Source: Podarcis muralis
Lineage: Eukaryota
DNA: 64,000 nucleotides
Assembly (NCBI RefSeq): GCF_964188315.1
Contig: NC_135659.1
Location: forward strand, 41,602,001 to 41,666,000
Reading direction: 5' to 3'
This document shows positions 5,562-55,125 of this stretch, piece by piece. Both the position numbers and the translations under genes were made by a program. Every line of letters starts with the position of its first letter. Within the stretch, counting starts at the first letter, position 1. Below the pieces are notes generated by a model. It ran no database searches and had not been told where the DNA came from. It saw only the letters and a program-made list of their open reading frames with translations.

Positions 5562-5602
<41 letters not shown>

Positions 5603-5640
5603 GAAGAAGAAGAAGAAGAAGAAGAAGAATTAATAATAAT
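5562..5640 (+). repeat. Compound microsatellite (AAT)13(AAG)9, the tail of a minus-strand LINE 3' end
   Basis: Read directly; adjoins TTATACCCCACCCATCT. Confidence 0.9.
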
Positions 5641-8300: not shown

Positions 8301-9470
8301 CTGCAAGACAAAGTGAAAGTGACAAATCTAAACATATATATTAGCTAGCATATTATCAAGCAGCAAATTCTGTATTCTTAGAAAGCCACTTTTCCTAATT
8401 AAAAGGGAACTTTAACTGATGAGTGAATTGTGGAAGCACTCAAGACTGTAGCATTGTTAAAGCTAAGTGGATAAAGACATCATTTGTGCCTAGAGAGAAG
8501 GCTAATGAAAGCCATTTATATAACCTGGGACTCAGCTACATTAGTAAAGAAAAAGTGTTTTATATGTGTTATAACACTGTGACACCAGATGGCGCTGTGG
8601 AGTCCCACCTTTAGCCAACGTGATTTCCCATTATGAAGTTTACAACATGTTTTCCAGAAACACTTTTTGTTGTGTCTCGATTTAGCCCTATTCAGCTTTT
8701 CAAAAGAAAAGACGGTATGTTTGCCCAGAAGTAAATCCCCCAAGTTAAATGAGATTTACTTCCAGTTAAGCATATGCACACACGTATGATGCTTATTTTT
8801 TTCTAGACTTGGAAGGCAAGTAGATGAACATATTAAACTCCTACCCCTTTTGCCTTACCTGTATCCATTGCAAGAATGAATTAAGCTTTTTGCACATGCT
8901 ATTTTGGGACACAAAAATTAGCAAATCAAGAAGGGGCTCAATAATGCTTACCTCGAAGAAGAGGAACAGCATTAGAAAATTATCTAACTACAGGGAGCTG
9001 GGTGTCAAATGATCATTCCTACAGGAGATCGTCTTGGCCAAAAGTCCTCTGTGGGGGTTTTCTTTGCCTCCCCTCCAAATTTTACTCTTTTGCATCTGTG
9101 TTGTTTTGCTGAAGGCTGCTTCCATGAAAACTTGGATTGGTTTGGCCATAAATGGAGCTACTTACCAACTGGGGAGTAATAGGTCGGTTCATTTATAAGA
9201 TGAACCAATGCAAGAATGGTGAAACATGCCCATCTCTAAAAGAAGTCTTTTCACCCAATTACCGTATTTTTCGCACCATAGGACGCACTTTTTCCCTCCC
9301 AAAAAGCAAGGGAAAATGTGTGTGCGTCCTATGGAGCGAATGCAGGCTTTCGCTGAAGCCTGGAGAGTGAGAGGGGTCGGTGCGCACCGACCCCTCTCGC
9401 TCTCCAGGCTTCAGGAAGCTATCCGCTAGCCGTGGGAGACCCAGCTCTCCCACGGCTAGCGGACCGCTGC

Positions 9471-10001
9471 GCTAATCCAGAAGCTTGGGGCGTGCGGAGC
9501 ACAGCGCGCCCCAAGCTTCTGGGTGCCGGCAAGGTCTCGCTAGCCCTGGGAGAGCCCCGCGACGTTGCATGGCTCTCCCAGGGCTAGCGAAGCGCCGCGC
9601 TAATCCCGAAGCTTGGGGCGCGTGGAGCTCAGCGCGCCCCAAGCTTCTGGGTGCCGGCAAGGTCTCGCTAGCCCTGGGAGAGCCCCGCGACGTTGCGTGG
9701 CTCTCCCAGGGCTAGCGAAGCGCCGCGCTAATCCCGAAGCTTGGGGCGCGTGGAGCTCAGCGCGCCCCAAGCTTCTGGGTGCCGGCAAGGTCTCGCTAGC
9801 CCTGGGAGAGCCCCGCGACGTTGCGTGGCTCTCCCAGGGCTAGCGAAGCGCCGCGCTAATCCCGAAGCTTGGGGCGCGCGGAGCTCAGCGCGCCCCAAGC
9901 TTCTGGGTGCCGGCAAGGTCTCGCTAGCCCTGGGAGAGCCCCGCGACGTTGCGTGGCTCTCCCAGGGCTAGCGAAGCGCCGCGCTAATCCCGAAGCTTGG
10001 G
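9471..10001 (+). repeat. 128-bp GC-rich minisatellite, 4 full units plus a partial unit
   Basis: GCTAATCC recurs at 9471, 9599, 9727, 9855 and 9983; the ORF track repeats with a 128-bp offset. Confidence 0.95.
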
Positions 10002-10082
10002 GCTTCGGGATTAGCGCTCCGCTCAGCCTGCTTCCCGGAGCGCCAGGCGCCCTGAAAGCAGAGCTCCAGGCGCTTCGGGAAC

Positions 10083-10445
10083 ACATCCGCAGCATGGGGA
10101 GCCTTGCAGGAATTCCCCACAGGGCTCCCCACGCTGCGGATAGCAGCCTGCTGCCTGGCGGGTGGGGCGCCCTGAAGCAGAGCGCCCCTCGCGCCAGGCA
10201 GACATCCGCAGAGTGGGGAGGCTTGCAGGAGTTCCCGACAAGGCTCCCCACGCTGCGGATAGCAGCCTGCTGCCTGGCGGGTGGGGCGCCCTGAAGCAGA
10301 GCGCCCCTCGCGCCAGGCATACATCCGCAGAGTGGGGAACCTTGCAGGAGTTCCCCACAGGGCTCCCCACGCTGCGGATAGCAGCCTGCTGCCTGGCGGG
10401 TGGGGCGCCCTGAAGCAGAGCTCCCCGCCCGCCAGACAGACATCG
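10083..10445 (+). repeat. 119-bp GC-rich minisatellite, 3 units
   Basis: ACATCCGCAG at 10083, 10202 and 10321; ACATCGG at 10440. Confidence 0.92.
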
Positions 10446-12685
10446 GCCAGCCCCACAAGCTTGGGGGACAGCAGGGAGGCGCAGCGCCACTATCCCGCTG
10501 TTCCTCGACCTGGTTCGGTTTCCCTGACCTGCTTTTGGGGGGGAAATAAAGGGGAAAATTTTTTCCTTTATTTCCCCCCCCAAAAAAAACTAGGTGCGTC
10601 CTATGGTCCGGTGCGTCCAATCGTGCGAAAAATACGGTAATATTACTGAGTCAGCTAATAAAAGGCTACATTCTCCTCTGAGTGAAGTTGGGTCACGTAA
10701 GAGAAGAAATCTAGTGGCATATTCCAGTTTTGATATCCTAACCCTCAGTGTTCTTAAAATAAATGGTCCAGATTTCAGAATCACAGTGTACGGATTAAAC
10801 AGCAGATAATATTTTATATGCTTGTTCTGCCTTACTCATAAGGTAGAATAATACTATAATTTTCCAGTAGGATGGGAAAACAGCTAAAATGCTTGTGCTT
10901 TGTGGTTAAAAACAACAGCAAAACCTGGCAGGAGGACATATCTATATTCACCCATCTGTGGCTGGCAGTAAGAGCATATCAAAGTTCAACAACCTTGCAA
11001 AAAGCTTCCCCTTATCTCATTACTACACCTGCAGACAGCTGATTAAATTAACTAGCAGCATCCAAACAGCGAGGAGGGATGAAATATTCCCCCAGGATCC
11101 TAATCTCCCATTTGCAAACAGCATTAACAAACTCCTTTGCCATCCTGCCCCAGGACATATCGACTATAAAGCTTTCCACACCAGTGGATACAATTATCTG
11201 ACCTTTCATAGCCAGTGACTATGAGGTGGTTTAGCAGATAATAGAATTACTTAATGATGTGTCACTCATGATTATCAAATTGATAGGATGAGTTCACTTC
11301 TGTGGTGTGGATTCATCAATGGGCAAATGAGAAGTACAGTTATTTAAAATGAAATATAACCATTTCCTATTCGTCACATCCATTTTTTTTGCTGATCTGT
11401 TTGGATACAGGAACATAAACAAGACAAGTTGCACAATGACTCTTAAATGTCTTTTCTACAAAAAAAGATTTTTTTTGGTAGAAATTTTAATTTTAATGCA
11501 TATTTAATGCAAAAATTGAAAGTGAATAAATAACAATCAATTAAAATATGGTATTATTTCTGTAGGTCAATTATTATTAAATAAGAACCATACTGCAGGG
11601 GGGAGAGGTAGCCTTTTAAAAGATGAACAACTGAACAATCTGCTTTTCTGGAAGTGTTGATATAACAGACATGTCATGAGCAAGTATATTTAATCTTGCA
11701 TCCCCATAGAATCTGGTTTCCTGCCATTCTAAAATAATACTGTTCTTATTTTGGGGACAGTGTAGGTATAATCACAATACTTCTGGTTGACAGCAGTAGT
11801 ATGGTCATATGCCCAGCTCATGTCAGTGCTATTTTCTATTAACTTTCAAAGATGCAAACAAATGTCTCCTCACTGTTTATTAAAAACTATGGCATCTGCT
11901 CATAAAGTTCACCATCCAACTTCGGCTGGGATTTTTATTCTGGGCTTGTTCATGTGGTGATAATGGCGACCTCAGTTGCATTAGATTGGCTGTATCTAAC
12001 AAAATTATTTTTGTTAATTTGCCAAGTTTCAATATTTTAAAATCTTGCTTAGAACCTGTTACTATTATTAGAACCTATTGCCCTGAGCACAGGCAGGCCT
12101 TACCTTATCAGATTAACTTCAACAAAATCTACATAAAGCAGATATGGATATGCTCCCCCAAAGTCACTTCCATTTTTCTTTTCCAACTAACATTCTACAT
12201 TCCATGGCTACTAAGCATGTAAAGCCCTCTTTGGGCTCTTTTCTTAAATGGAGTTTTGCCCCTTACATTTTTTTAAAAAAAAAATTCTGTAAAGTTCTGC
12301 AAACATTTGGGTTTCCCTAAGAATCCTGATAGATCTCCTTCTCCAGTGGGCCCCGTTTTGGTTACAATCATGGCAGCATTCGCTATATGGAGTGAGTCTA
12401 ACATAACCTCAGATAGCAGCTTTAATTTTGTCAGTTTGCCATTTATTGCACTAGCAAAGGCATTTACAGATAAGACAAGAACTAGAACAGGGGCAGATTA
12501 GGGATGTTTTTAAATCCCATTTATATTCCTCCTGGAATTTGTGGTTTTGCATTCCTCTTTCTTGTGGAGTGGCACCAGTGAATTAGAAATTTGACTTTCT
12601 TCTGTTTTGCTATGCATTCATAACATTTATGGTTCCACCCCCATATGGGTTATTGCTGAGAATGAACGCTTGTGTGAATTGCTTA

Positions 12686-13354
12686 CCGTATTTTTTACCC
12701 TATAGGACGCACCGGCCCATAGGACGCACCTAGATTTTTTGGGGGGAAATAAAGGGGGAAAAATATTTTTCCCCCTCCGCTTCCCCCGACGCCAGCCCCC
12801 AGAACGGGACCCAGAGCGGTGCCGAAGCTGCGTGCAGCTTAGGCATCGCTCTGGGAGCTTGAGGGGCTGGGGGCAGGGAAAGCGGAGCTTCCCCCTCCCC
12901 CAGCCCCCAGAACAGGACCCAGAGCCATGCCGAAGCTGTGTGCAGCTTTGGCATCGCTCTGGGAGCTTGCGGGGCTGCAGGAGGGGGAAGCCCTCCGCCA
13001 GCCTTCTAACCAAGTCGGGGGACAGCGGGAAAGGCGCGCTGCGCCTCCCGCTGTCCCTTGAGTTTGCGGGGCTGGCGACGGGGAGGAGCAGGCTTCTCCC
13101 CCCCCCCCCGTCAGCCTTCTAACCAAGTTGGGGGACAGCGGGAAAGGCGCGCTGCGCCTCCCGCTCTCCCCCGAGCTTGTGGGGCTGGCGGTGCGGCTCT
13201 CCTGAAGCCTGGAGAGCGAGAGGGGTCGGTGCGCACCGACGCCTCTCGCTCTCCAGGCTTCAGCGAAAGCCTGCATTCGCCCCATAGGACGCACACACAT
13301 TTCCTCTTCATTTTTGGAGGGGAAAAAGTGCGTCCTATAGGGCAAAAAATATGG
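12686..13354 (-). mobile_element. CCGTA-ended MITE copy 2 (inverted relative to copies 1, 3 and 4), with internal duplications of ~108 and ~113 bp
   Basis: TA at 12684-85 and 13355-56; CCGTATTTTTT...AAAAAATATGG ends; palindrome at 13202-13263; CAGCCCCCAGAAC at 12793 and 12901; CAGCCTTCTAAC at 12999 and 13112. Confidence 0.88.
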
Positions 13355-14085
13355 TAAATCTGGGAGTGGGTGGTGGTGTGGTATTTAAAAGCGTTTAACT
13401 CCCTGCCCCATTATTTCCTTCCTTAGGGCAATGTGTATGACCCAACCCCTTCAACCCCTTTATCACGGCAACACTGTGAAATAAGTTTGGTTTTATTAAG
13501 AGCATGCCCATATTTTTTTTTAGATGAGCTGTAAGCTCTGCTAAGAAAATAAATGCTTTTCCATACAAACACGAAGGGAGTGCATCTTACTAGATAACAC
13601 ACCTTTTCCCTTCCTCCTGCCAAATTAAGATGATAGATCAATTGTACTATCCAAGTACTGCCACTTGGTTGATAACCAGCCATATATAGCGGTTCAAAAG
13701 AAGCAATGCTATTTCTTGTGCCCCCTCCTGCTTTGAAGAACAAATAAGGTTAACATGATGGGCAGCTCCATCAAACCTATGTAGCAAGAGGGGGGAATTT
13801 GTTTTTGTTTCAAAAGTGACAGAAACTGAAAGCCTAGATGATTTTTCATGTACAGCAAGAAGTCGTTCCCTCTCCCCCTCAGTTTTATAAGATCATGTTC
13901 GCAGTGTGAATGGACAAGAATAAAGCACTCTTGAATGAAATAATTTCTTGCTTTCATCTTGCATAATTCAAATCAGCAAGAGCCTTGCGGTGCTGTGGTG
14001 CCTTGCGCCACTGATGCTCAGCCTTTTCTTTAAAAACACCATTTATCTATCCTTGTGCAGCCGCATGTTCAATTTATCATCATAC

Positions 14086-14190
14086 CTGCAGGATAATGCT
14101 CCCGAAAGCATTCTTCAGTAGATTAACTGCATCAGCGTGAGACAGCCCATCCAAAGGCTGCCCATTAATACTGACAATCCGATCGCCAAC
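14086..14190 (-). CDS. PATJ: PATJ exon, end of PDZ10 ([35 protein letters not shown])
   Basis: Acceptor ttttttcccttttag, donor CAG|gtatga; 105 nt, phase 0 to 0. Confidence 0.96.
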
Positions 14191-16435
14191 CTAAAAGGGA
14201 AAAAAAAGTACAATAGCTACAGAAAAATTGCTGGCATTAAGGAAAATTGGAAGAAAGCTCAACATTTCTTGCAAGTTCTGACTCTGCATACTCATGCTTC
14301 CCGGTTATAGAAAGACAATAGAGATCTGCTATGTTTTGATCATTGAGTACTTTTCATAGGGAGGATAAAACACTCCTCCTGGAAGTAATAGAACACAAAC
14401 AAAGAGCTCCTACTTCACTGATAAATTTTGGAAGCAGAGAATTACACCAAAACACATCCTAAGTAGCAAAAGCCTACAGCAGTCCAAGCACATGCATGCG
14501 GCGCACAAAAGCACATTCTTTCAATATGCAGTGTCATGGGAGAAATCACATGATCTCTGGTAGATAGTATATCTGTGACCACAGATGTCAATGGGGTACA
14601 TAGGAACCAATACTTACTACTGAAGATATAGGGTTTAGTATTAATTTTCTGCAACAGCCTGTTTAATTTTCCATTTGTCTCACTTAAATAAAGCGTGACA
14701 TAAATGGCATGACAGTTATCACTGGCCTCATCACCTCCACACAGAGTCCTAGCATTCACCTAAAGAAGCAGGTCGAACCAAACAGTCTTACAGCAGATCC
14801 AGATGAAGTTCAGTCTTGAGGCCAGTTCACACAGTGAAAAGGCAGCTTGTTTCCCCACACAATCTTCTTCCTATACACAACTTCATCCCTGACATGTGGT
14901 ACGGAGTAGAGTACTACTGCTATCATGGAAATCGCTGTAGGGTACATATGTGTACCAGTGGTGCACACAATATGGCTCCCCATGTTCCCAGGATAAGTTG
15001 TTGTTTTCTGAGTGGGAAGAATTCCAGAGCTGTATAGTAAACACTTGAAATGCCTCTCTGCAAGCTCTTCTTCTTTTAGCGAGAGTGCATGAACAGTTCA
15101 GGAAAGAAGGCACTTATATCTTATCTTGCTGTTTTTAGGCAACCATAATCTTTGTGGTACTTATACTTGCATCTTTACATCACTATAGTTAAGTATATTG
15201 ATACAAAAGCTACAAAGATATTCTACCTTCAAAAATAAAAATAAAATGGTACTATTAACCAAATAGTAGGCACTAAATCTCGGAGCCATTTCAGGCAATC
15301 AAAACATGCTTCGGCTTTCCATGGGAGACATTTTTTTAAAAAAAGAGGTTATTTCTATGCACATCTTTACTGAATACCCTAAACATTTAGGGCCAAGTAA
15401 GACATTCAGGATCTTTGCCACCCAGTGTATTCTGTGGGGTCCCTGGGGACTTGGGCTGTTTGCCATGGCTTGGGCTGTTTGCCAAAACAGCTGCCAGCTC
15501 TTGGAAAGAGTTCCTATGATTGCAGAAGCTGAAAAATACATGGTGGCAATGACATAAATAATTGCTCTGAACCTATGGCTGTACCCATGGATGTCCCGGG
15601 TCACAATTTAAGTTCTCTACACACATGTTTCATCAGGAAAGTCAAATAACATAGTGTTGAGCACATTTTAAGTGTCTGAAGTGGCTTCTCAATCACCAAA
15701 TACTTGGTTAAATAGCAATCATATTTCTTAGAGTTAGGCAGAGAGGAAGGTACATAGAAGACACACAATGGCCCAGTTTGCAGATCATATTAAAACTAAC
15801 TATAATTTAATGGGAGTGAAACAAACTGCCAAATCACAAGCAGTAAGCCAAGAACAATACTTATGTTTTGTTTGGAGGAAACATGAGCCCTGGTCCATGT
15901 GACATGACAAGCCAGGCTTTGGCTTTGCTGTGCCTGCAGTGCAGGATCAGGGGTGCAACACTACGGGAACTTCTGAGCAGTGTGCACCAGCAAACTGCTT
16001 GTTCACATGACATCACAGTTTGCTTTGAACTATGGTTTAATGTGAAGCACAAGCCAGGCCAGTGGATCTAGCACAAGACAATCCATATGGGTTTTAAGTA
16101 AATTCATAGAGACAATTTGTGTTCTTTCAGCTTCCTTGCTTTGTTGAAATGGCAGATTGCATGACATGACTCTGGTTCCAGAAACCAGAGTCCATTTAAA
16201 AGGCAATTTTCTATTATTACTGTTATGCAATCACTCACAGTAGTTGACACAGGTGGTTTTGCTAATCAGAAGTAAGAAAGAAGCACATTTCACAGTTCGA
16301 AATAGAATGGAAATGCCTGTCCGAGTATATCGAACAATATATAACCCTTGCAGTTTTCTTGGGGGGGGGGGGAATAAAATCAGCAACATGAAAATAAAGA
16401 CAATATATATGGATAATTTTATCTTTTTCACTTAC

Positions 16436-16558
16436 TTTTAGTTTGTGTGTACGTGCTGCTACTCCACTGGCTTGAATCATGGCAATGAAGATTGGAATGT
16501 CTCCCAATGGGCTTCCTTTGCCCCCAGCTATGCTGATACCAAGAGCATCATTTGGACC
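16436..16558 (-). CDS. PATJ: PATJ exon, PDZ10 ([41 protein letters not shown])
   Basis: Acceptor ctctctgttaag, donor AAA|gtaagt; 123 nt, phase 0 to 0; inside ORF 16262..16693. Confidence 0.96.
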
Positions 16559-16728
16559 CTTAACAGAGAGGTTAGCAACATAACTATTTGTGTTGACATC
16601 ATTCAAGACATTTAACACATGGGCCTTAGTGATAAATAAAACCAAGCATGACAGTGATGCGAAATTTCTAGCAATTTCCTGTGCATCGTTCAATATTGAT
16701 TTAGCAACAACTAAGTCCAGGGGATGAA

Positions 16729-17095
16729 GGGACGCGGGTGGCGCTGTGGGTAAAACCTCAGTGCCTAGGACTTGCCGATCGCATGGTCGGCGGTTCGAAT
16801 CCCCGCGGCAGGGTGAGCTCCCGTCTTTCAGTCCCAGCTCCTGCCCACCTAGCAGTTCAAAAGCACCCCCAAGTGCAAGTAGATAAATAGGTGCCGCTTT
16901 CTAGCGGGAAGGTAAACGGTGTTTCCGTGTGCTGCGCTGGTGCTGGCTTGCCAGAGCAGCTTCGTCACGCTGGCCACGTGACCCGGAAGTCTCTCCGGAC
17001 AGCGCTGGCCCCCGGCCTCTTAAGTGAGATGGGCGCACAACCCTAGAGTCGGACACGACTGGCCCATACGGGCAGGGGTACCTTTACCTTACCTT
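16729..17095 (+). mobile_element. Full-length Sauria SINE (Squam1)
   Basis: GGGACGCGGGTGGCGCTGTGG head with A box and GGTTCGAATCC B box; ACCTTT-type tail; TSD taagtccagg(g/t)gatg at 16712-16726 and 17095-17109. Confidence 0.92.
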
Positions 17096-17583
17096 AAGTC
17101 CAGGTGATGTATGCGTGTATGGAAAGTCTGTTCAATTGGAGAAGTAAAACACAACCTAAAGGCAGTCACTGGTTCTTTTATATGAGACTCCTATTGATCC
17201 ACAGAACCCTTAATTTGGTAGCAACTCATGCGCATAAGCTGCGGCAACATGATGGCACATATATCACATACAAAGGCCACTACACCACTAGTAGGTATTG
17301 ATATAATTTAACTAAGGATGGGTGAGTAAAATGGCCAAACTCTGTTTTGGTCCCATGTTCACATACAGCCCAAAGTGAATTCATCACCTCTCATTAAAAA
17401 ATAAATAAATCTGCAAATAAAAACTGAACTTTTTTTTTTTAAGAAATAAATGTAGAAATATTTTGGGTTTGTTTTTTTTAAGAAACAAACGCGGCTAACT
17501 TTTACACACGGGAAGAACCTTATGTAGCTCCATTCACTTAAAATAATAACTAAATGCTTTGAAAAGTAAGAAAAGCCACTCAC

Positions 17584-17624
17584 TCTTGTTATTTCCACAG
17601 TCCTCGGGCTCATATCTGTCCCAA
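17584..17624 (-). CDS. PATJ: PATJ small exon, start of PDZ10 (VGTDMSPRTVEITR)
   Basis: Acceptor ctttattag, donor AGA|gtgagt; 41 nt, phase 1 to 0. Confidence 0.9.
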
Positions 17625-17951
17625 CTAATAAAGAAATGAACAATTAGTTTCTGTAATTAAAAGATAATGCCATCAGGAGATTATAGACCCTGGTTGCTGT
17701 TTCAAAATTATCACTGATGAAAAGCTTGTTTATGCCAGAGCAAGAAATACATTATGCAACTGGAAAAGGACTTAGCGTCTGCCATTCACTGAGCATGGAA
17801 GTGGGGAACCCATTATCCACTGAAGTGTGTTCAAGTGTATACCCCCAATAGACACAAGGTGACTGTTGCATATCTTTGCCCAGAGATGGTGATACCATAT
17901 GGGTATCCTTTGCCTAACTTTTGATTTATTAGGTTTGTTGCAAATGATATA

Positions 17952-18995
17952 CTGTATTTTTCGCCCTATAGGACGCACTTTTCCCCCTCCAAGAAGGAAG
18001 GGGAAATGTGTGTGCGTCCTATGGGGCGAATGCAGGCTTTCGCTGAAGCCTGGAGAGCGAGAGGGTTTGGTGCGCACCGACCCCTCTCACTCTCCAGGCT
18101 TCAGAAAACTCTGCACAAGCCGCGGGAGCCCTCCCCGGCTTGCGCAGCGCTGCCTCTCATCCCGAAGCCCCGGCGCACTCAGCAGTCGCGTCAGGGCTTC
18201 GGGTAGCTCTGCGCAAGCCGCGGGAGCCCTCCCCCGGCTTGCGCAGAGCCGCCTCTTATCCCCAAGCCCCAGCGCACTGGGCAGTCGCGCCAGGGCTTCG
18301 GGTAGCTCTGCGCAAGCCGCGGGAGGGCTCCCCCGGCTTGCGCAGAGCCGCCTCTTATCCCGAAGCCCCGGCGCGCTCAGCAGTCGCGCCGTGGCTTCGG
18401 GTAGCTCTGCGCAAGCCGCGGGAGGGCTCCCCCGGCTTGTGCAGAGCCGCCTCTTATCCCGAAGCCCCGGCGCTCTGGGCAGTCACGCCGTGGCTTCGGG
18501 TAGCTCTGCGCAAGCCGTGGGAGGGCTCCCCCGGCTTGCGCAGAGCCGCCTCTTATCCTGAAGCCCCGGCGCGCTCAGCAGTCGCGTCGGGGCTTCGGGT
18601 AGCTCTGCGCAAGCCGCGGGAGGGCTCCCACGGCTTGCGGAGAGCCGCCTCTTATCCCGAAGCCGCGGCGCACTGGGCAGTCGCGCCGTGGCTTCAGGTA
18701 GCTCTGCGCAAGCCGCGGGAGGGCTCCCCCGTCTTGCGCAGAGCCGCCTCTTATCCTGAAGCCCCGGTGCGCTCAGCAGTTGCGTCGGGGCTTCGGGTAG
18801 CTCTGCGCAAGCCGCGGGAGGGCTCCCACGGCTTGTGCAGAGCAGCCTGTTCTGGCGGCTGGGGTCGGGGGAAGCTCGGGCTTCCCCCGCCCCAGCTCCG
18901 CGCCTGGGGGGGAAATAAATTTTTTTCTTTATTTCCTCCCCAAAAAACTAGGTGCGCCTTATGGGCCGGTGCGTCCTATGGGGCGCAAAATACGG
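17952..18995 (+). mobile_element. CCGTA-ended MITE copy 3, carrying a 99-bp array
   Basis: TA-CTGTATTTTTCGC...GCAAAATACGG-TA; same arms as copy 1. Confidence 0.9.
18109..18845 (+). repeat. 99-bp GC-rich minisatellite, 7 full units plus a partial unit, alternating A/B variants
   Basis: CTCTGC(G/A)CAAGCCG at 18109, 18207, 18306, 18405, 18504, 18603, 18702 and 18801. Confidence 0.95.
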
Positions 18996-19323
18996 TAAAT
19001 ACTAGGGGTGTGCAACTGCAAGCCTTGGAACCTAATTCAGTGCTTTGGAAAACAGCAAGCCCTGATCTAAAGTGCTTCGTAGGCTGACCAATGTAGTTTG
19101 GGGTCTGCCTGAATTTGCTCTCTGCCCTGATCACTATTAGGAGATTAAAAATTAGCTATAGGTTTTCTGGACAATGGGTGAAATGTGCAAGCGTAGTAGT
19201 TCTTGCAGAGTGCATAGTAGTAGTTCTTGCAGACTGCCAACTTATATTTTGGTCAGTGAACACCCTAAATAAATACCTTTCAATGCTTAACTACGTACAC
19301 TAAAATGTTCATAACTAGAATTA

Positions 19324-20010
19324 CCGTATTTTTCGCCCTATAGGACACACTTTTTCCCCTCCAAAAATGAAGGGGAAATGTGTGTGCGTCCTATGGGGCG
19401 AATGCAGGCTTTCGCTGAAGCCTGGAGAGCAAGAGGGGTCGGCGCGCACCAACCCCTCTTGCTCTCCAGGCTTCAGGAAGCTATCCCCCTAGCCCGGCAA
19501 GCTCCCAGAGCGATGCCAAAGCTGCGCGCACCTTCGCCATCGCTCTCCGACCCGTTCTGGGGGCTGGGGGCGGGGGAAGCTCGGGCTTCCCCCACCCCCA
19601 GCCCCACAAACTCCGGGAGTGATGGCGAAGGTGCGCTCACCTTCGCCAGTGCTCTCCGACCCACTCTGAGGGCTGGGGAAGCTCGGGCTTCCCCCACCCC
19701 CAGCCCCGCAAGCTCCGCGAGCGATGGCGAAGGTGCATGCACGTTCGCCAGTGCTCTCCGACCCACTCTGGGGGCTGGGGAAGCTCGGGCTTCCCCAGCC
19801 CCGCAAGCTCCGGGAGCGATGGCGAATGTGCGCGCAGCTTCGGCATCGCTCTGGCTCCCATTCTGGGGGCTGGGGTCGGGGGAAGCTTGGGCTTCCCCCG
19901 CCCCAGCCCCGTGCCTGGCGGGGGGAAAATAATTTTTCCCCCTTTATCCCCCCCCCCCAAATCTAGGTGCATCCTATGGGCCGATGCGTCCTATAGGGTG
20001 AAAAATACGG
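19324..20010 (+). mobile_element. CCGTA-ended MITE copy 4, carrying four ~100-bp diverged units
   Basis: TA at 19322-23 and 20011-12; CCGTATTTTTCGCCCTATAGG...CCTATAGGGTGAAAAATACGG; internal units at ~19490-19905. Confidence 0.9.
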
Positions 20011-20449
20011 TAATTGCAGATATTTAGGGGGGTGGAGAGCCATATAGCTGAAAAATTAAAGTCTGGTTGGGCTTTTCCTTCAGTATTTAGAAATGACTTG
20101 GATATGCCAGTTGCCCATTATAAATTAAGTAGTTTATTGGGCCCTGAACCTTAGTAGGTAACAGACAACTTTAAGATGTTGCACGAAGTGGAATCAAAAC
20201 AGGAAAAACAGGACCTGGGCTACTTCAAATGCAATGTGAGAAACTGTAATTAGCACATTAGAAATGCCTAATCATCTGCTCCATATTTCACAGGACTATT
20301 TCATATTTAGGAGTTATTGCTAAGAATTGCTTCCTTGCTACATACAGAAGTAAATACCTAACTAGGTTTATAAATGAACAGAATAAGATGGCAGTGAACA
20401 TTCAGCATAATTCACAGGGTTGTATTGGTTTGCAGGTTCTGTCCCATAC

Positions 20450-29981: not shown

Positions 29982-30029
<48 letters not shown>

Positions 30030-31798: not shown

Positions 31799-31838
<40 letters not shown>
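31799..31838 (+). repeat. (ATT)n microsatellite, the tail of a minus-strand LINE 3' end
   Basis: Read directly; followed by CCCATCTGACTGGGTTGCCCCAGCCACT. Confidence 0.9.
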
Positions 31839-33570
31839 TTATTTGCTGCCCATCTGACTGGGTTGCCCCAGCCACTGCTAGTCCTACGCAGGCAATTAAG
31901 AATAAATCTTTCCACAATAGTTAATTGATGTCTGTTTTAACCTCTTTATATGGTTTTTACTGTATGGGTTTATGTATTTTTGTTACCTGCTTTGATCTTT
32001 TCAACGAAATAGTGATTTATAAATATGTTTTACCACTTTTTTACTGAGTCTTAAGCACATAAGCATGTGATAGGAACAGTAAAATCTACACAAAATAATG
32101 CTCCAGAGTGGCTTTCAGAGCTAATTCTAATGAAAATGAACAGGTTTCATTTATTCAGTAACATGGAATTTGCTTTCTGTATAAAGTTATTCATCACAGG
32201 AAGAGCAGTCAGCAGGAGGTCACAGAATGTGCTCAGTTTTAAAAAAACATTTAAATGAAATAGCACTACATCACTCAGGGCAAGGTGACATGAAGTGAAA
32301 AAGACATGGAGGAGGAAGAAAATATTAATATCCTTGCCTGAAAGCAAGTATTGTGATAAAGATATGGATGGAGTTGGGTTTTTTTGAAGCTTCCTCCTTT
32401 GCAGTCCCGCTAACAGTATTTACAACCACTCTGCTGTAGCAAAAAGTCAAGGTCTAATCTCAAACTTCTGGTTTGTTTCTATGGCATGAGTGATCATGTA
32501 TTTACAGAACACTGGATTCATTTGCAGTACAAATTACTGCTGAATGAAAAAAATGCTTAAGGCTGCATACAGGAAGAAGGTGTGTGGTCAAATTGCTAAT
32601 GCATTTACCGAAATAAAAAAGCAGTTTAAATTTTATTAAGCATGCTCCCATAACTGGATTATTTTTCACAAGAATAGTGAAAAATGCAGCTGGAATGGCC
32701 ACAAAGCAGGAGAAGGATTTCTCTTACAACCAGCTTTTCAGACCCCCTTGTTATATGAAGGTCGTAAGATCCAGTCCTACAGCCTAATGATAGCTGTGTA
32801 GATTCACTGTTGTACAAACTATACTTTAGTCTTCAACAGGGGAATCAGGACCAAATACCAGGTTGCAGCTTGACCTAAAATGGCTCGTAGCTACAGCATT
32901 CCTATCATACATAGAAACGAATGATTTTTTTAAAAATTAAGAAGTTGGTGCCCAAATGCTTTTTTTGACTGAAGGTGGGCCCCTGGTCTCAAAAGGATGA
33001 AATTTGCTAAACTGCAGCTTTATGACATAACAACGGGCAAAAAATATGAACCATATTTTCCAGTCTTCTGACACATGCCTGTGGAGAGCAAGGAGGCAGC
33101 AGACAGGAAGCTGGTAGAAATTTCATTTCTCCTGTACAAAACATGATTAAGCCCAACGTTACCCAAGTAATATCATCCAAAGATGGGAACTCTCTATCTG
33201 CATTTTGACAATGAAAGTCAAACTTTCAAAGTGGGATTTTTCAATGAAGAAATCTGTTAATCCATGGGAACAGTTTTCACATATTTCTAATATGTATGTT
33301 TTTACACCTCCAGTGATTTTATGCAATTTTCACACTGATATTGAAGTTCACACTTTCAAAAGCTTATCTTTGGTGCAAAAAGCTATTATATTTAGTCTCC
33401 TGCCCCTATCTTTTAACCATATACGTAAGAGAAAATCTAAGCGCACGTGTCTGGTACTCGACATTCATCAGAAAAAGGAAGCATCAAATATGCAACAGCA
33501 GATCAAGCTACGTGCATAGTGTGTACAGTTAAGGTTAAGCTATGCTGCGTTAAGGGAATTTATGCACAAC

Positions 33571-41821: not shown

Positions 41822-41883
<62 letters not shown>
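41822..41883 (+). repeat. (AAAG)n microsatellite, about 15 units
   Basis: Read directly. Confidence 0.95.
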
Positions 41884-51144: not shown

Positions 51145-52714
51145 CTCCCCCGGATGTCAATTTCCCCCTGACCTATACTACACAAGAAACCAAGGATGGA
51201 GGTGTTTCATTTTCACTCTTGATCACCAGTATAGATGAACCCAATTCTGAGATGGGGATGAGGCTACCACTCTGGCTACAAACCAGCGTGAAACGTATAA
51301 AATACGCATTAAAAATTAACAAGCATCTACAGAAATAGCTGGTCCATGATGGTTTTCAGAATACTGTACTGCAAAATCTGATTAATGGCTGAACATGTAA
51401 TAGAAAATCATAATGTTAACTGCATAGGCAACAGATTTTAACAGTCACTGGCACATGCCACAGCCAAACTAAATCTGTTTGCCTTGAGGGGGAAACCATT
51501 CCATAATATCCAACTAAGAAGAGAGAATCTGAACAAGTGATAGTTTCAAATCCTAAAACTGGGAAACACATTTCCATGTTAATTCTGTAGTTGGTTGCCA
51601 CAGGACATCAAAGCTTGCTTTAAAAAAGGTGTTTTTTTACATACAGCTATAGCCTCCTCACAAAATTGTCCCAATGGTGTTTACATCAACACTGTAAGCT
51701 AAGCCAGTATTAATATCCCTGCCTTACAGATGTGATAAGGGCAGAGTAAAGTGAAGCCTTTTAGTAAGTTCATGCCTGCGGTGATATAGATCAGCCAAAA
51801 GTAAGGTCTGGGAGAGATTAAAGGACATGCTTAATTGTTTGTTTGGCTGGCTGGTGTTCCTAGCGAACTTAAGTCCTCTATACATCCTACAATATTTCAC
51901 CTCTCAGTTTCTTCTCCATACACCATATTCCCATGCCTCTCATGTATAGTCTAATTTCTTTCCCCAGTCTCTTTCAAAATGTCATACCAGGTCATATACA
52001 AAACTATGCTTCAAAAAATGCTTTCCACATCTATCAGGTAATAGCATCATGCTACCTTTAGCCCGTGGCAGCCGACCTATTTGCATTCCACAGATGAGGC
52101 ATCCCATCTGCAATGTGAGCTGTTTAGCTACCAGCCAAAGTGATGACAAAAGTCCTCAAGTGGTCTTCCTTGCAGTAAATCAACCAACTAGTTTGCCATT
52201 TGTTCCCCAGTCACACTATCAGCAAAGGCCAAATAATAATAACATGGATCCTAAGAATTGCTAGTGGTATTCTCACATAGCAGAACGGACTTTCCTGTCT
52301 AATTGCATTCCCTCATCTTCCTGGAACACCTCTCCTGAGGGTCTGTGAGACCCTTCAGAATGGTGTTTGATTCAGCACAGGGTTTGGCACTTTCAAAAAT
52401 TGGTAGAAAATGGAGACCTCCTGCTCTTCTCTCTCCTTCTCCATTTCCACACAAACACAAGCATCTTTCACTTGCACCAGGGCATCATTACATCCAAACC
52501 AACATGTCACAAATACGTTTTTCTTCACCTAAAAATCTGCTGGGCACTCTACCTTCTTAAAAGATCAAATAAAACAATAGTCCCAGCCATAGGTCTAAAA
52601 TCTAATTAGGCAGTATGCGAAAAGCTGAACTGAACACACAGTCAGCAAAGCTTATTGTAGCAGTAAAAGCAAAACATGGCTTTAGTAACGAAGCCGGATT
52701 CCAATCCTGTAGAG

Positions 52715-52990
52715 CAGGGATGGGGAAACCCTTTTCAGCCAAAAAGCCACATCCCCTTGGGGGCAACTTTCTGAGGGCCACATGTTATTGATGGGTGACA
52801 AAAAAGCAGACAGGGCAAGCGATTATACAGCCACTGAAAAGTCAGAGGTTTATAAATATGCGCCTCTCCATCCAGACAAGCAAGGACACATTCCTTGCGT
52901 GGCTTGGGGAGGAGGCCTGTGTGGAGGAGAGGGCCAGATAGAAGCCTAGAGAGCCACATTTGGCTACCAGGCCTCAGATTCCCCACTCAC
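52715..52990. mobile_element. hAT-Charlie-like MITE (degenerate)
   Basis: CAGGGATGGGGAAACC left end and GATTCCCCAC right end; flanks resemble the NTCTAGAN target; TSD imperfect. Confidence 0.5.
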
Positions 52991-55125
52991 TCCTAGAACC
53001 CATGGCGTGGGGTGAAGAACCTGCCTCAAGCAGTGGAAGTTCAAGAGAACTTCTGGCATGCAGCGTTGCTGCTCATCTTCCCCACCCCTGGGTGGAGAAG
53101 CTGAGTGAGTGGCAACACTATGAGGAGCACCCTGGCTCCCACCGAATACAGTGAGAGCTGGGACACGGTAGCAGCGGAAGTGGGGCATGGCAGAGGGGCA
53201 GGAGGGGCAACTCCCATTTTGCCTCAGGTGAGGAAATGGGACAGGCTGCCCATGAGGAAATGCTGGCTTTCCTGTTTGTTGCCAGCTTGAATTATTTTCC
53301 TTGCTTTAAAGAGCTGCCCAGGGACTGGAAGGGCAAGGGCAAGAGCTAAAGAGAGATGTACTCCTAAGGTCAGCAGGCCTTTCTCTTCTCGCACCTGCTT
53401 TCTCTCGTATCATGCCAATGCTACCTTGTCTTTCCTCCTTTCTGCTTGTGTAATATACACAAATTAAAAAACCAAACCTGGTCATTCAGTTGCTAGGCAA
53501 TGGCCTCCTGTGCTCTCTTTTCACTTCTGGGACCACCCAGCAGCATAGACATTAATGCACCAACCCAACTGAGCTTGCATAAATGAGAGTAGCAGATCCA
53601 CCTGTAAGGAGCTCTTTCAAAAGGTTAAAATGCCACCAGCCGGATTCTTGGCAAGGAAGGAGAAGCAGGAGGGAACCATTAAAAAATGAGCCCCCTGCGC
53701 CTCTCCTTGAACAGCTGATTGACGGGGTCTTTCTGAAAGGTCTCCATGTGTACAACCCCAACTACCTGATTTGAAAGGTTAGCTGCCTGCACAGGACCTG
53801 TTTATGCACACAATTCCCCATTCAGCTGAGGCCATGGAAATGGAAACCTTCTTTTGAACACACTATACCTGCTGGCTAGAGTACATTGATTGCCTTGCTT
53901 TTAACTGAATGGATATATGTAATAATCAAAATATGGCAACAAAGGCAAATAAATGGCATACACAAATTGTCCTTGTGGATTTTATCCAAGGAGTCTCCAG
54001 ACTGGGGGTGAGGAGCCTTTTTTCTCTTGAATGCTGCATTCCCTTTAGGGCTAAAGTCAGGGGCCACATGGCTGCAGTAGGCAGAGCCCCCCCCCCTTTC
54101 CTCTCTCCATCTGACTTCTCTCTCCCCCTTCTTTCAAGTCCAATGGGCTGCTGAGGGAGGGACTTTGGTTACTGCCAGAGGCCTGAACTAACCACAGAGG
54201 GCTTTACCATTCTCCTTCTACCTTCTTCATCTCCCCCAACCTCATTTCTCCTCTCCCTCCCACTTTCTGTCCCCTGGGCTCCCCCCAATCACATGAAATT
54301 AGGCAAAAGGCTGCAGTTTCCCCATTTCTGTTCCAAACTGGAGCAACTGTGTACTGAATTAGGTTTAGATAATTCCGCGTCACTCATAGTGTCAGGCTAT
54401 TTTCATGTCGTTTCCAGTTCCAGGATCTCTCTATTTCCGCACAGCAAGCCAGACATATGGCCTAGACCAGTGGATTAAGGAGTTGTAGCTGTCCAGATAT
54501 AGCCATGCTCCTACTCCCATTAACCCAAGCCAGTGTGGTCAAAGGTGAGGAACGATTCAAGTTGGAGTCCAGTGATATATGGAGAGCCACAGCTTCACCA
54601 CCTCTGAATCAGGCTTGGCTTATATGAGAAGAATTTCCTGCTTTTGCAGTCATGAAATACATATGAAAAGGGTGAGAGTCTGCTTTCATTTAGTTGTTTT
54701 CCCTTCCTACTTGGATCCTGAATTGCTCAAGGAAGTTACACAATATCCAGTTAGCTTAATATTGTCTGATCTTCCGTTAAACTGAAGAAGAGCTTGCTCT
54801 GTTTTACTTGGGTTGCCTTCTACCAAACCACCTTATGCTCTGTTCTAATCTATCACACTGGTCTTCCATAACTTGCTAAAATGTGAAAGTAATTTAATTT
54901 CGAGGCATTGACATATCAGTTTTCAGTAGACTCAGATGAGGGCACCACCAGAATGAGAGGTTACATCATGGGGGAAAAATGAAAGAAAGGGAACTGTGTG
55001 ACAAATGGAGCACACTTCAGCAGCCCTCAATTTCATTTGAATACTGAATCTTTCTCATTTTGCAGCTCCCCCAAGTTCAGGCCACTAATGATGAGCACAA
55101 GAGTTAATGACTATGCCATTCTTAC

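Follow-up and report, generated by a model that had tools for sequence, protein, structure and literature searches.

Conserved flanking modules around a variable tandem array are known from the DTC84/pearl-type MITEs (miniature inverted-repeat transposable elements) of bivalves and from DINE-1-like elements of insects. For DTC84 of the clam Donax trunculus, the authors have called the flanks a 'cassette' for core repeats, and have described variants in a fixed order, placed a palindrome at the hotspot and attributed the diversity to deletions in an array that had formed beforehand; the core repeats of its sister elements in the pearl family are, as they note, unrelated (Satovic and Plohl, 2013, PMC3879986). 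For vertebrates, a review (PMC9659126) lists the Xmix MITE of Xenopus, which gives the Xstir satellite, and a Tc1-mariner MITE of X. tropicalis with an internal satellite, miDNA4; for such MITEs with expanding interior repeats, stem-loop replication errors have been proposed, as in the model of Hikosaka and Kawahara (2004) in the form in which it is cited in PMC3879986. Foldback elements, and Tetris of Drosophila virilis (PMC4079207), are likewise repeat- and structure-rich DNA transposons that seed tandem arrays. Here we describe four elements, labelled E1–E4, which all lie within 11 kb of a 64-kb stretch of the genome of the lizard Podarcis muralis (positions 41,602,001 to 41,666,000 of contig NC_135659.1; hereafter the window, positions being counted from its first letter). 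We consider it probable that E1–E4 are independent insertions of a non-autonomous subfamily of Passer transposons, whose interior consists of modular, inherited hairpin units that expand, contract and drop out. The principle of flanks serving as a cassette has already been published for DTC84/pearl, Xmix and miDNA4, and E1–E4 are a vertebrate example of it with no new mechanism.

The locus differs from each of these systems in recognizable features. In DTC84/pearl and DINE-1-like elements the duplication is AA, a microsatellite forms the tail and mobility may be Helitron-like; E1–E4, by contrast, have a TA duplication and pogo-type terminal inverted repeats (TIRs), combine several families of units in one element and are made of units with a palindromic structure along their whole length. 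With TA in place of AA, and with no microsatellite adjoining the arrays, only the architecture is alike and E1–E4 do not belong to the pearl or DINE-1 group. Xmix and miDNA4, as far as the cited passages describe them, belong to another transposon family and are composed of other units. Foldback elements have long TIRs made of repeats; E1–E4 fall outside this group, because their TIRs are short (27–29 bp) and their direct-repeat arrays are internal.

The ends of the four elements can be delimited exactly. A 29-mer derived from them, TACCGTATTTTTCGCCCTATAGGACGCAC, occurs at eight sites of the window when up to 3 mismatches are allowed, against 0 sites in 100 shuffles, and these sites constitute four inward-facing pairs (9260/10639, 12684/13356, 17950/18997 and 19322/20012). 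TA is present on both sides of every element; CCGTA is the start of six of the eight ends, and CTGTA and CCATA start one each. The left arms (about 160 bp) and the right arms (about 95 bp) are common to E1–E4. Identity among the left arms is 90–93% over 157 bp; each includes a 62-bp near-perfect palindrome besides the TIR and an inverted GTGCGTCCTAT motif. Common to the right arms are, in addition to the TIR, a pair of GTGCGTCCTAT motifs and a GGGGGAAATAAA... hairpin. A BLAST search of the four elements against the window found no other fragment in the remaining 53 kb. The flanks are without mutual similarity, which indicates four separate insertions; segmental duplication as the cause of the cluster is ruled out for the same reason. 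E2 (669 bp) and E4 (687 bp) are within the usual MITE size (under about 800 bp), and E3 (1044 bp) and E1 (1376 bp) exceed it because of array expansion.

The left TIR motif and the inverted subterminal motif fold together as a hairpin of about 75 nt (z −6.9; 9262–9345, and the same part in E2–E4). At the left end of the published Podarcis Passer CCATAACACGCA pairs with TGCGTGTTATGG, and in the elements here CCTATAGGACGCAC pairs with GTGCGTCCTATGG; these changes on both sides mean that the pairing has been kept. Both TIRs of E1 (9262–9290 and 10611–10637) carry the variant CGCAC(C/G)AT where the other copies have CGCCCTAT, and this shared derived change at both ends could be a subfamily TIR variant or the result of end-to-end correction.

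Four shared families of units, A/A', B, C and D, make up the interiors of E1–E4, according to a module map that we constructed from pairwise BLAST, a unit library and alignments. A is found in E1 and E3, C in E1 and E2, and D in E2, E3 and E4. The A unit of E1 (128 bp) and the A' unit of E3 (99 bp) align over their whole length as one two-hairpin unit, with a local alignment score 5–7 z units above shuffles (0 of 500); in A0, the first unit of E1 (107 bp), the hairpin has its short form. Homology is clear between the D units of E2 and those of E4 (z 16.5 against shuffles), and a 14-nt head, AGCCCCRCAAGCTC, starts all C and D units (z 2.4–2.9). Tested against shuffles in the same manner, homology of units B, C and D with the 62-bp palindrome was not found, nor was homology of A with C or D, and no unit resembles the palindrome. 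Where modules are present, their order L–A–B–C–D–R is colinear in all four copies, a count based on four copies and few read joints. E2 and E4 are the closest pair in their arms (93% left, 85% right) and both have D arrays adjoining R, as vertical inheritance of the cargo predicts. All arrays of the window sit inside the arms and none is free-standing.

Folded as single strands and compared with dinucleotide shuffles, the units, the left end and the palindrome have z values of −5.3 to −11.2, and the right arm −3.6. The elements have 63–68% GC and a CpG observed/expected ratio of 0.67–0.88, against 40% GC and 0.23 in the rest of the window. Much of this architecture had been recognized in a sequence-only reading of the same DNA, made from the letters without database searches. 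Its four elements with shared arms, TIRs, palindrome and GTGCGTCCTAT motifs are confirmed by the eight ends and the arm alignments, with the correction that E2 lies in the opposite orientation; its array periods of 128+119, ~108, 99 and ~100 bp agree with those given by Tandem Repeats Finder (TRF: 128 and 119 for E1, 108 for E2, 99 for E3 and 102 for E4); and its GC-rich stem-loop units are real, since every unit type folds as a strong hairpin. The dispersal of CpG-rich hairpin arrays, which it also proposed, is supported by the CpG ratios. Its picture of four unrelated interiors has to be given up in view of the shared unit families.

Table 1. Features of E1–E4 in the window (L, left arm; R, right arm; TA, target-site duplication).
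Feature	Positions	Strand	Remark
TA of E1, left	9260–9261		partner 10638–10639
E1 = L – A x4.4 – fold-back – B x3.4 – C x0.7 – R, 1376 bp	9262–10637	+	module map, TRF
E1 outer left Passer terminus: 27–29-bp TIR and inverted subterminal GTGCGTCCTAT	9262–9348	+	~75-nt end hairpin
62-bp near-perfect palindrome, subfamily-specific	9353–9414		fold z −11; also present in E2, E3 and E4
A array of E1: 107-bp founder-like A0, then 128-bp two-hairpin units	9421–10003	+	units 98–100% alike
Perfect fold-back with 16-bp stem at the A|B boundary of E1	9981–10017		stem 9981–9996 with 10002–10017
B array of E1: 119-bp two-hairpin units	10024–10441	+	units 93–94% alike
Single C unit of E1	10446–10515	+	83–86% to E2 C units
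E1 right arm: GGGGGAAATAAA hairpin and outer Passer terminus	10536–10637	+	terminus 10585–10637, two GTGCGTCCTAT motifs and TIR
E2 (inverted) = L – C x2 – D x2 – R, 669 bp	12686–13354	−	TA 12684–12685, 13355–13356
D array of E2, 108-bp units	12777–12991	−
C array of E2, ~113-bp period	12991–13194	−
E3 = L – A' x7.5 – D tail – R, 1044 bp	17952–18995	+	TA 17950–17951, 18996–18997
A' array of E3: 99-bp two-hairpin units homologous to E1 A	18109–18851	+	weak 198-bp dimer periodicity
Partial D unit (tail and small hairpin) beside E3 right arm	18846–18900	+
E4 = L – D x4 – R, 687 bp	19324–20010	+	TA 19322–19323, 20011–20012
D array of E4	19486–19910	+	first and last units hybrid

The affiliation with Passer is given by the termini. 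Published Passer transposons (Gao et al., 2020, PMC7386202; Wang et al., 2023, PMC9976928) and E1–E4 are alike in the TA duplication, the short TIR starting with CCGTA and the AT-rich TA sites; Passer is reported to insert at TA in AT-rich DNA and to prefer genes and their 5' regions, and its TIRs in Squamata are 18–29 bp long (PMC9976928). We have taken published ends from Supplementary Tables S1 and S2 of PMC9976928. In Table S1, Anca-PasserC-lizards of Anolis carolinensis (1849 bp, 423-aa transposase, TA duplication) has the TIR CCGTATTTTTCGCTTTATAGGACGCACCT followed by ...ATAAGACGCACCTAGTTTT, and a Podarcis muralis copy (3014 bp, 425-aa transposase) has the left end ...GGAAATGTGTGTGCGTGTTATGGAGCGAATGCAGGC. 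The Anolis TIR 27-mer matches three left ends at 3 mismatches (24/27 bases), the Anolis subterminal 19-mer matches all four right arms and the Podarcis left-end 36-mer matches all four left arms, with 0 matches expected by chance in each case; the longer Anolis 29-mer gave no match in the window at 3 mismatches. The right subterminal ATAAGACGCACCTAGTTTT and the left subterminal GGAAATGTGTGTGCGT..GGAGCGAATGCAGGC of Passer are both found in E1–E4, and CCGTATTTTCCGCACTATAAGGCGCACC, the TIR of teleost Passer known from transposition assays (PMC9976928), shares 23 of 27 positions with the consensus here by manual count. Judged by these sequence matches, E1–E4 appear to be non-autonomous, TA-inserting derivatives of Passer in the pogo superfamily. 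The Tc2/pogo-like origin assumed in the sequence-only reading was right in substance, and Passer is the more precise name because the published Anolis and Podarcis ends match both arms.

Unlike the published Passer transposons, E1–E4 have no transposase gene, and their interior is replaced by hairpin repeat modules. A Pfam search of six open reading frames (ORFs) inside the elements gave nothing above threshold; the long interior ORFs, being without Pfam domains, are regarded as artefacts of GC richness and the elements as non-coding. Ten long ORFs outside the elements also gave nothing above threshold and no gene context, and no Pfam-bearing ORF of at least 110 aa is present anywhere in the window. 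MITE derivatives and hairpin arrays are described in neither of the two papers on Passer, in which the word MITE is found 0 and 1 times, and a survey of Anolis DNA transposons (PMC3014272) mentions no such interiors either, the comparison being one with these three papers and without Dfam or Repbase. A full-text literature search for the TIR and motif strings returned unrelated primers only, and a metagenome scan with the palindrome arm gave two 21-bp chance matches with no homology past the seed.

Sequencing reads have been useful for judging how widely the parts of these elements are distributed. The read evidence concerns the stretch 9112–13611 and comes from two runs, X24 and X23, counted at a likeness of at least 80% in 150-bp bins. 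The depth of unique flanks is about 1–2 in both runs, and that of the outer left end is about 6500 in X24 and 8000 in X23, which corresponds to several thousand copies of the termini. Together with the TIRs, the TA duplication and the lack of coding sequence, this high copy number is as in MITEs. The depths for X24 and X23 are ~690–815 and ~960–1160 in the B bins, ~660–910 and ~880–990 in the C and D bins of E2, and ~30–170 and ~100–420 for the 128-bp A type. In raw reads, the unit types thus have roughly a hundred to about two thousand copies each, so that every unit type is a family-wide module and none is a private invention of one copy. Reads in the thousands pass, at 9260, 10639 and 13356, into AT-rich sequence that has no consensus (agreement 0.33), which confirms the exact ends and many insertion sites. 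The 150 bp to the left of E1 (9112–9261) have a depth of about 170, compared with about 1–2 for unique sequence, and are also present in a contig of a related species described below; E1 therefore landed at the edge of another moderately repeated sequence.

The reads also reveal how E1–E4 are related to the most abundant copies. At 9348, 5378 and 6427 reads diverge into one consensus, GCGCAGCTATCCCAGAAGCCAGAACAGCAA (agreement 0.91), and at 10585, 4288 and 4855 reads enter from another consensus (agreement 0.87), which in reverse complement resembles, by eye, the published Varanus and Anolis Passer beside the right end. The dominant family therefore shares only about 87 bp on the left and about 55 bp on the right with E1–E4, and the 62-bp palindrome and the right-arm hairpin are specific to the subfamily. 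The fixed chassis of the sequence-only reading accordingly holds for the arms among E1–E4 and, in the dominant family, for these outer parts only. A 30-nt interior overhang of the dominant family is not present in the window. From the mixed bin 13162–13311, the subfamily may be roughly estimated at a few hundred copies.

Joints between modules are found repeatedly in the reads. Among the joints listed, the passage from L to B without the A array (9438→10116) is represented by 26 and 66 reads, longer C arrays (13101→12995) by about 190–210 reads and the fold-back joint of E1 (9853→10024, opposite strands) by 27 and 46 reads; the joint from L to the D head (9424→12977, opposite strand) has 13 and 26 reads, some of them necessarily from E4. 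Since the unique depth is about 1x, each recurrent joint corresponds to tens of copies, indicating that such architectures have been copied by transposition. The shared modules and the recurrent joints fit the inheritance of loaded variants accompanied by expansion, contraction and deletion, an outcome close to the one, simple deletion derivatives of one autonomous element, that the sequence-only reading had itself named as counting against its proposal.

The age of the insertions and that of their cargo can be compared. A 4.5-kb contig of organism B, a related species (run X13), covers 9115–9245, 10641–12146, 12225–12683 and 13457–13611, and has 27 and 66 letters of its own in place of E1 and E2, with a flank divergence of about 3%. 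E1 and E2 are absent from organism B, and the loaded elements have therefore transposed recently. Contigs from the same species stop precisely where the elements begin or end. The B units of E1 show 12 non-CpG changes from their consensus and 93–94% identity; they are 6–7% apart, which exceeds the flank divergence, and the B array is therefore older than the insertion and came in as cargo. Among the A units of E1, only 2 of 384 positions vary, and this array has probably expanded very recently, in place or shortly before insertion. The units of E3 are about 10% apart, 12 of their 31 changes being CpG transitions, and units two apart are closer than neighbours (7.0 against 9.5 differences), which suggests a weak dimer periodicity of 198 bp. 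The arms of E1–E4 differ by 7–10%, again more than the flanks, and this indicates that several source lineages have been active in parallel.

We consider that E1–E4 were presumably moved in trans by the transposase of Passer, a DD35D cut-and-paste family of the pogo superfamily, which would recognise the 27–29-bp TIRs and the subterminal GTGCGTCCTAT motifs. Between the outer termini such an element would hold the 62-bp palindrome, A/A' (99–128 bp), B (119 bp), C (~113 bp), D (102–108 bp) and the right-arm hairpin, copies differing in the modules retained and in the repeat number. This variety may arise in source elements by slippage or unequal exchange, by deletion of modules and by fold-back or template-switch synthesis at hairpins; the loaded variants would then spread by transposition, and some arrays may grow further in place or shortly before insertion. 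By these findings, a recently active lizard lineage of Passer, a pogo transposon, has a non-autonomous branch that carries and multiplies CpG-rich hairpin minisatellites. Length polymorphism, breaks in assemblies, palindromes that are fragile in replication and CpG-dense DNA near genes are likely to stem from elements of this type, and the four adjacent copies provide a compact view of modules being expanded, deleted and recombined. Their value is descriptive, for the repeat annotation of squamates, and not conceptual.

Several points weigh against this explanation. The module order was defined from E1 and E2, so that E3 alone, with A before D, tests it, and this is statistically thin. The connection between C and D consists mainly of the 14-nt head, and that between B and the A family is weak: A' with B gives z 3.9 (1 of 500), and A0 and A with B give z 1.5–1.9, which is not significant. 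Arrays outside transposon arms may exist. The copy numbers come from a read depth of about 1x in 150-bp bins, the window holds no transposase gene, and no autonomous partner, which would encode a DD35D transposase with BrkDBD/HTH_Tnp_Tc5, has been seen in this genome. Finally, all four subfamily copies are packed into 10.7 kb and the rest of the window (53 kb) contains none, whereas an even distribution of about 10^2–10^3 subfamily copies over a genome assumed to be about 2 Gb predicts far fewer than one. With arms that differ by 7–10%, the copies lack the close kinship that simple local hopping would leave; the cluster possibly reflects a regional insertion preference, for which the published preference of Passer for genes and their 5' regions is a candidate explanation.

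Some features of the interiors point to rearrangement at hairpins. At the A|B boundary of E1, the last A unit is broken off after ...GCTTGGGGC, and the sequence runs on as the reverse complement of the 16 bases of that unit before the break; this junction is the trace left by a fold-back strand switch. When A units of E1 type are compared with those of E3 type, both sides have changed at six stem positions with the pairing kept, and 86.7% of the cells in A-unit stems are paired, against 33–56% when the partners are slid; this co-variation is essentially one lineage contrast and counts as few events. The D hairpins of E2 and E4 types likewise differ by paired changes (GCC...GGC/GGC...GCC and CTGC...GCAG/GTGC...GCAC). 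The fold-back junction and the co-varying hairpin arms point to template switching at hairpins. In E4, the 5' arm of the first unit has 2 mismatches with the complement of the 3' arm of the fourth and 5 with its own, and the 5' arm of the fourth has 3 with the 3' arm of the first and 6 with its own. These hybrid end units could result from exchange at hairpin centres or from an array-scale inverted duplication, and with six D units in all they serve as a lead only. The idea that E4 is an array nested inside a split hairpin was dropped, because the first unit is of type 2 again after its 3' arm. A bolder reading, which we regard as rather unlikely, concerns how the units themselves originate: the interior may be a self-renewing palindrome system. 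Hairpin units would be born and reshaped by fold-back or intrastrand template switching with co-evolving arms, exchanges would occur preferentially at hairpin centres, as is suggested by the fold-back of E1 and by the hybrid units at the two ends of the E4 array, and young CpG-island-like variable arrays would be seeded near genes through the 5' preference of Passer. If such a palindrome system were real, it would be a natural vertebrate model for palindrome-driven minisatellite birth.

Among the other explanations, the one that withstands the evidence best, and which we still consider unlikely, is that the arrays are leftovers of the 5' non-coding region of an autonomous lizard Passer, the elements being plain internal-deletion derivatives of a repeat-carrying full-length transposon. 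Published transposase-encoding Passer copies of Podarcis muralis and Pseudonaja textilis do show GC-rich tandem repeats directly after the left subterminal region, one motif of the Podarcis repeat, selected post hoc, is found in a C unit of E2, and the interior of the dominant family after 9348 (GCGCAGCTATCCCAGAAGCC...) resembles, by eye, GCTATCC and the sequence flanking the A unit's second hairpin. However, the comparison concerns published copies and includes no full-length element of this genome, the stretch of likeness to the Podarcis repeats is a short one selected afterwards, and in the dominant family another sequence follows, which the window lacks.

The sequence-only reading had favoured a constant chassis on which interchangeable cargo is created repeatedly, each copy or excision-repair event making a new and unrelated hairpin minisatellite by template switching. 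The perfect fold-back at 9981–10017 is one footprint of the process it had in mind, hairpin arms that co-vary between unit variants are what would be expected if one arm were copied from the other, and the A array of E1 is almost homogeneous. Repeated creation of new cargo nevertheless conflicts with the unit families shared between copies in one order, with unit types at about 10^2–10^3 copies each and with recurrent junctions, the fold-back junction itself being present in some 20 or more copies and thus inherited rather than private. Arm likeness and cargo type, whose comparison had been suggested as a check, also run together, E2 and E4 being most alike in their arms and sharing the D cargo, and this is contrary to cargo arising anew. 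On this balance we judge the proposal quite improbable.

Capture of host minisatellites or satellites between the ends of a transposon, in the style of Pack-MITE transduplication, is a very unlikely origin of the units. The high unit depth would suit such a capture, the other unit copies possibly lying outside arms, but every array of the window is inside arms, the arm–unit junctions recur in the reads, and the head motif shared by C and D and the architecture shared by A and A' are as would be expected of a family evolving inside the element. For cargo derived from host genes, a Pack-type trait, no protein-domain signal was found in the interiors, and the units are family-wide repeats.

Least credible of all is a function of the arrays under selection, as small-RNA precursors or as unmethylated CpG-island-like modules, for although strong hairpins, the CpG ratios given above, compensatory arm changes and the tendency of Passer to insert near gene 5' ends could be cited for it, a search of Rfam at a permissive threshold found no known RNA family and only generic miRNA-like matches far below gathering scores, the proportion of CpG transitions among the E3 unit changes is as in methylated DNA, E1 and E2 are lineage-specific insertions, and youth explains the high CpG content.

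Apart from the elements, a few minor features of the window may be mentioned. At 12112–12411 the read depth is slightly raised (about 3–9 fold), and about 78 bp of this part (12147–12224) correspond to 10 letters in the contig of organism B, this being a small lineage-specific indel or a short repeat. Ordinary microsatellites are present at 5562–5640 ((AAT)26), 29982–30029 ((ATT)16), 31799–31843 ((TAT)15) and 41822–41883 ((AGAA)15), and the region 52000–54500 is mildly richer in GC (0.44–0.52 against about 0.40).

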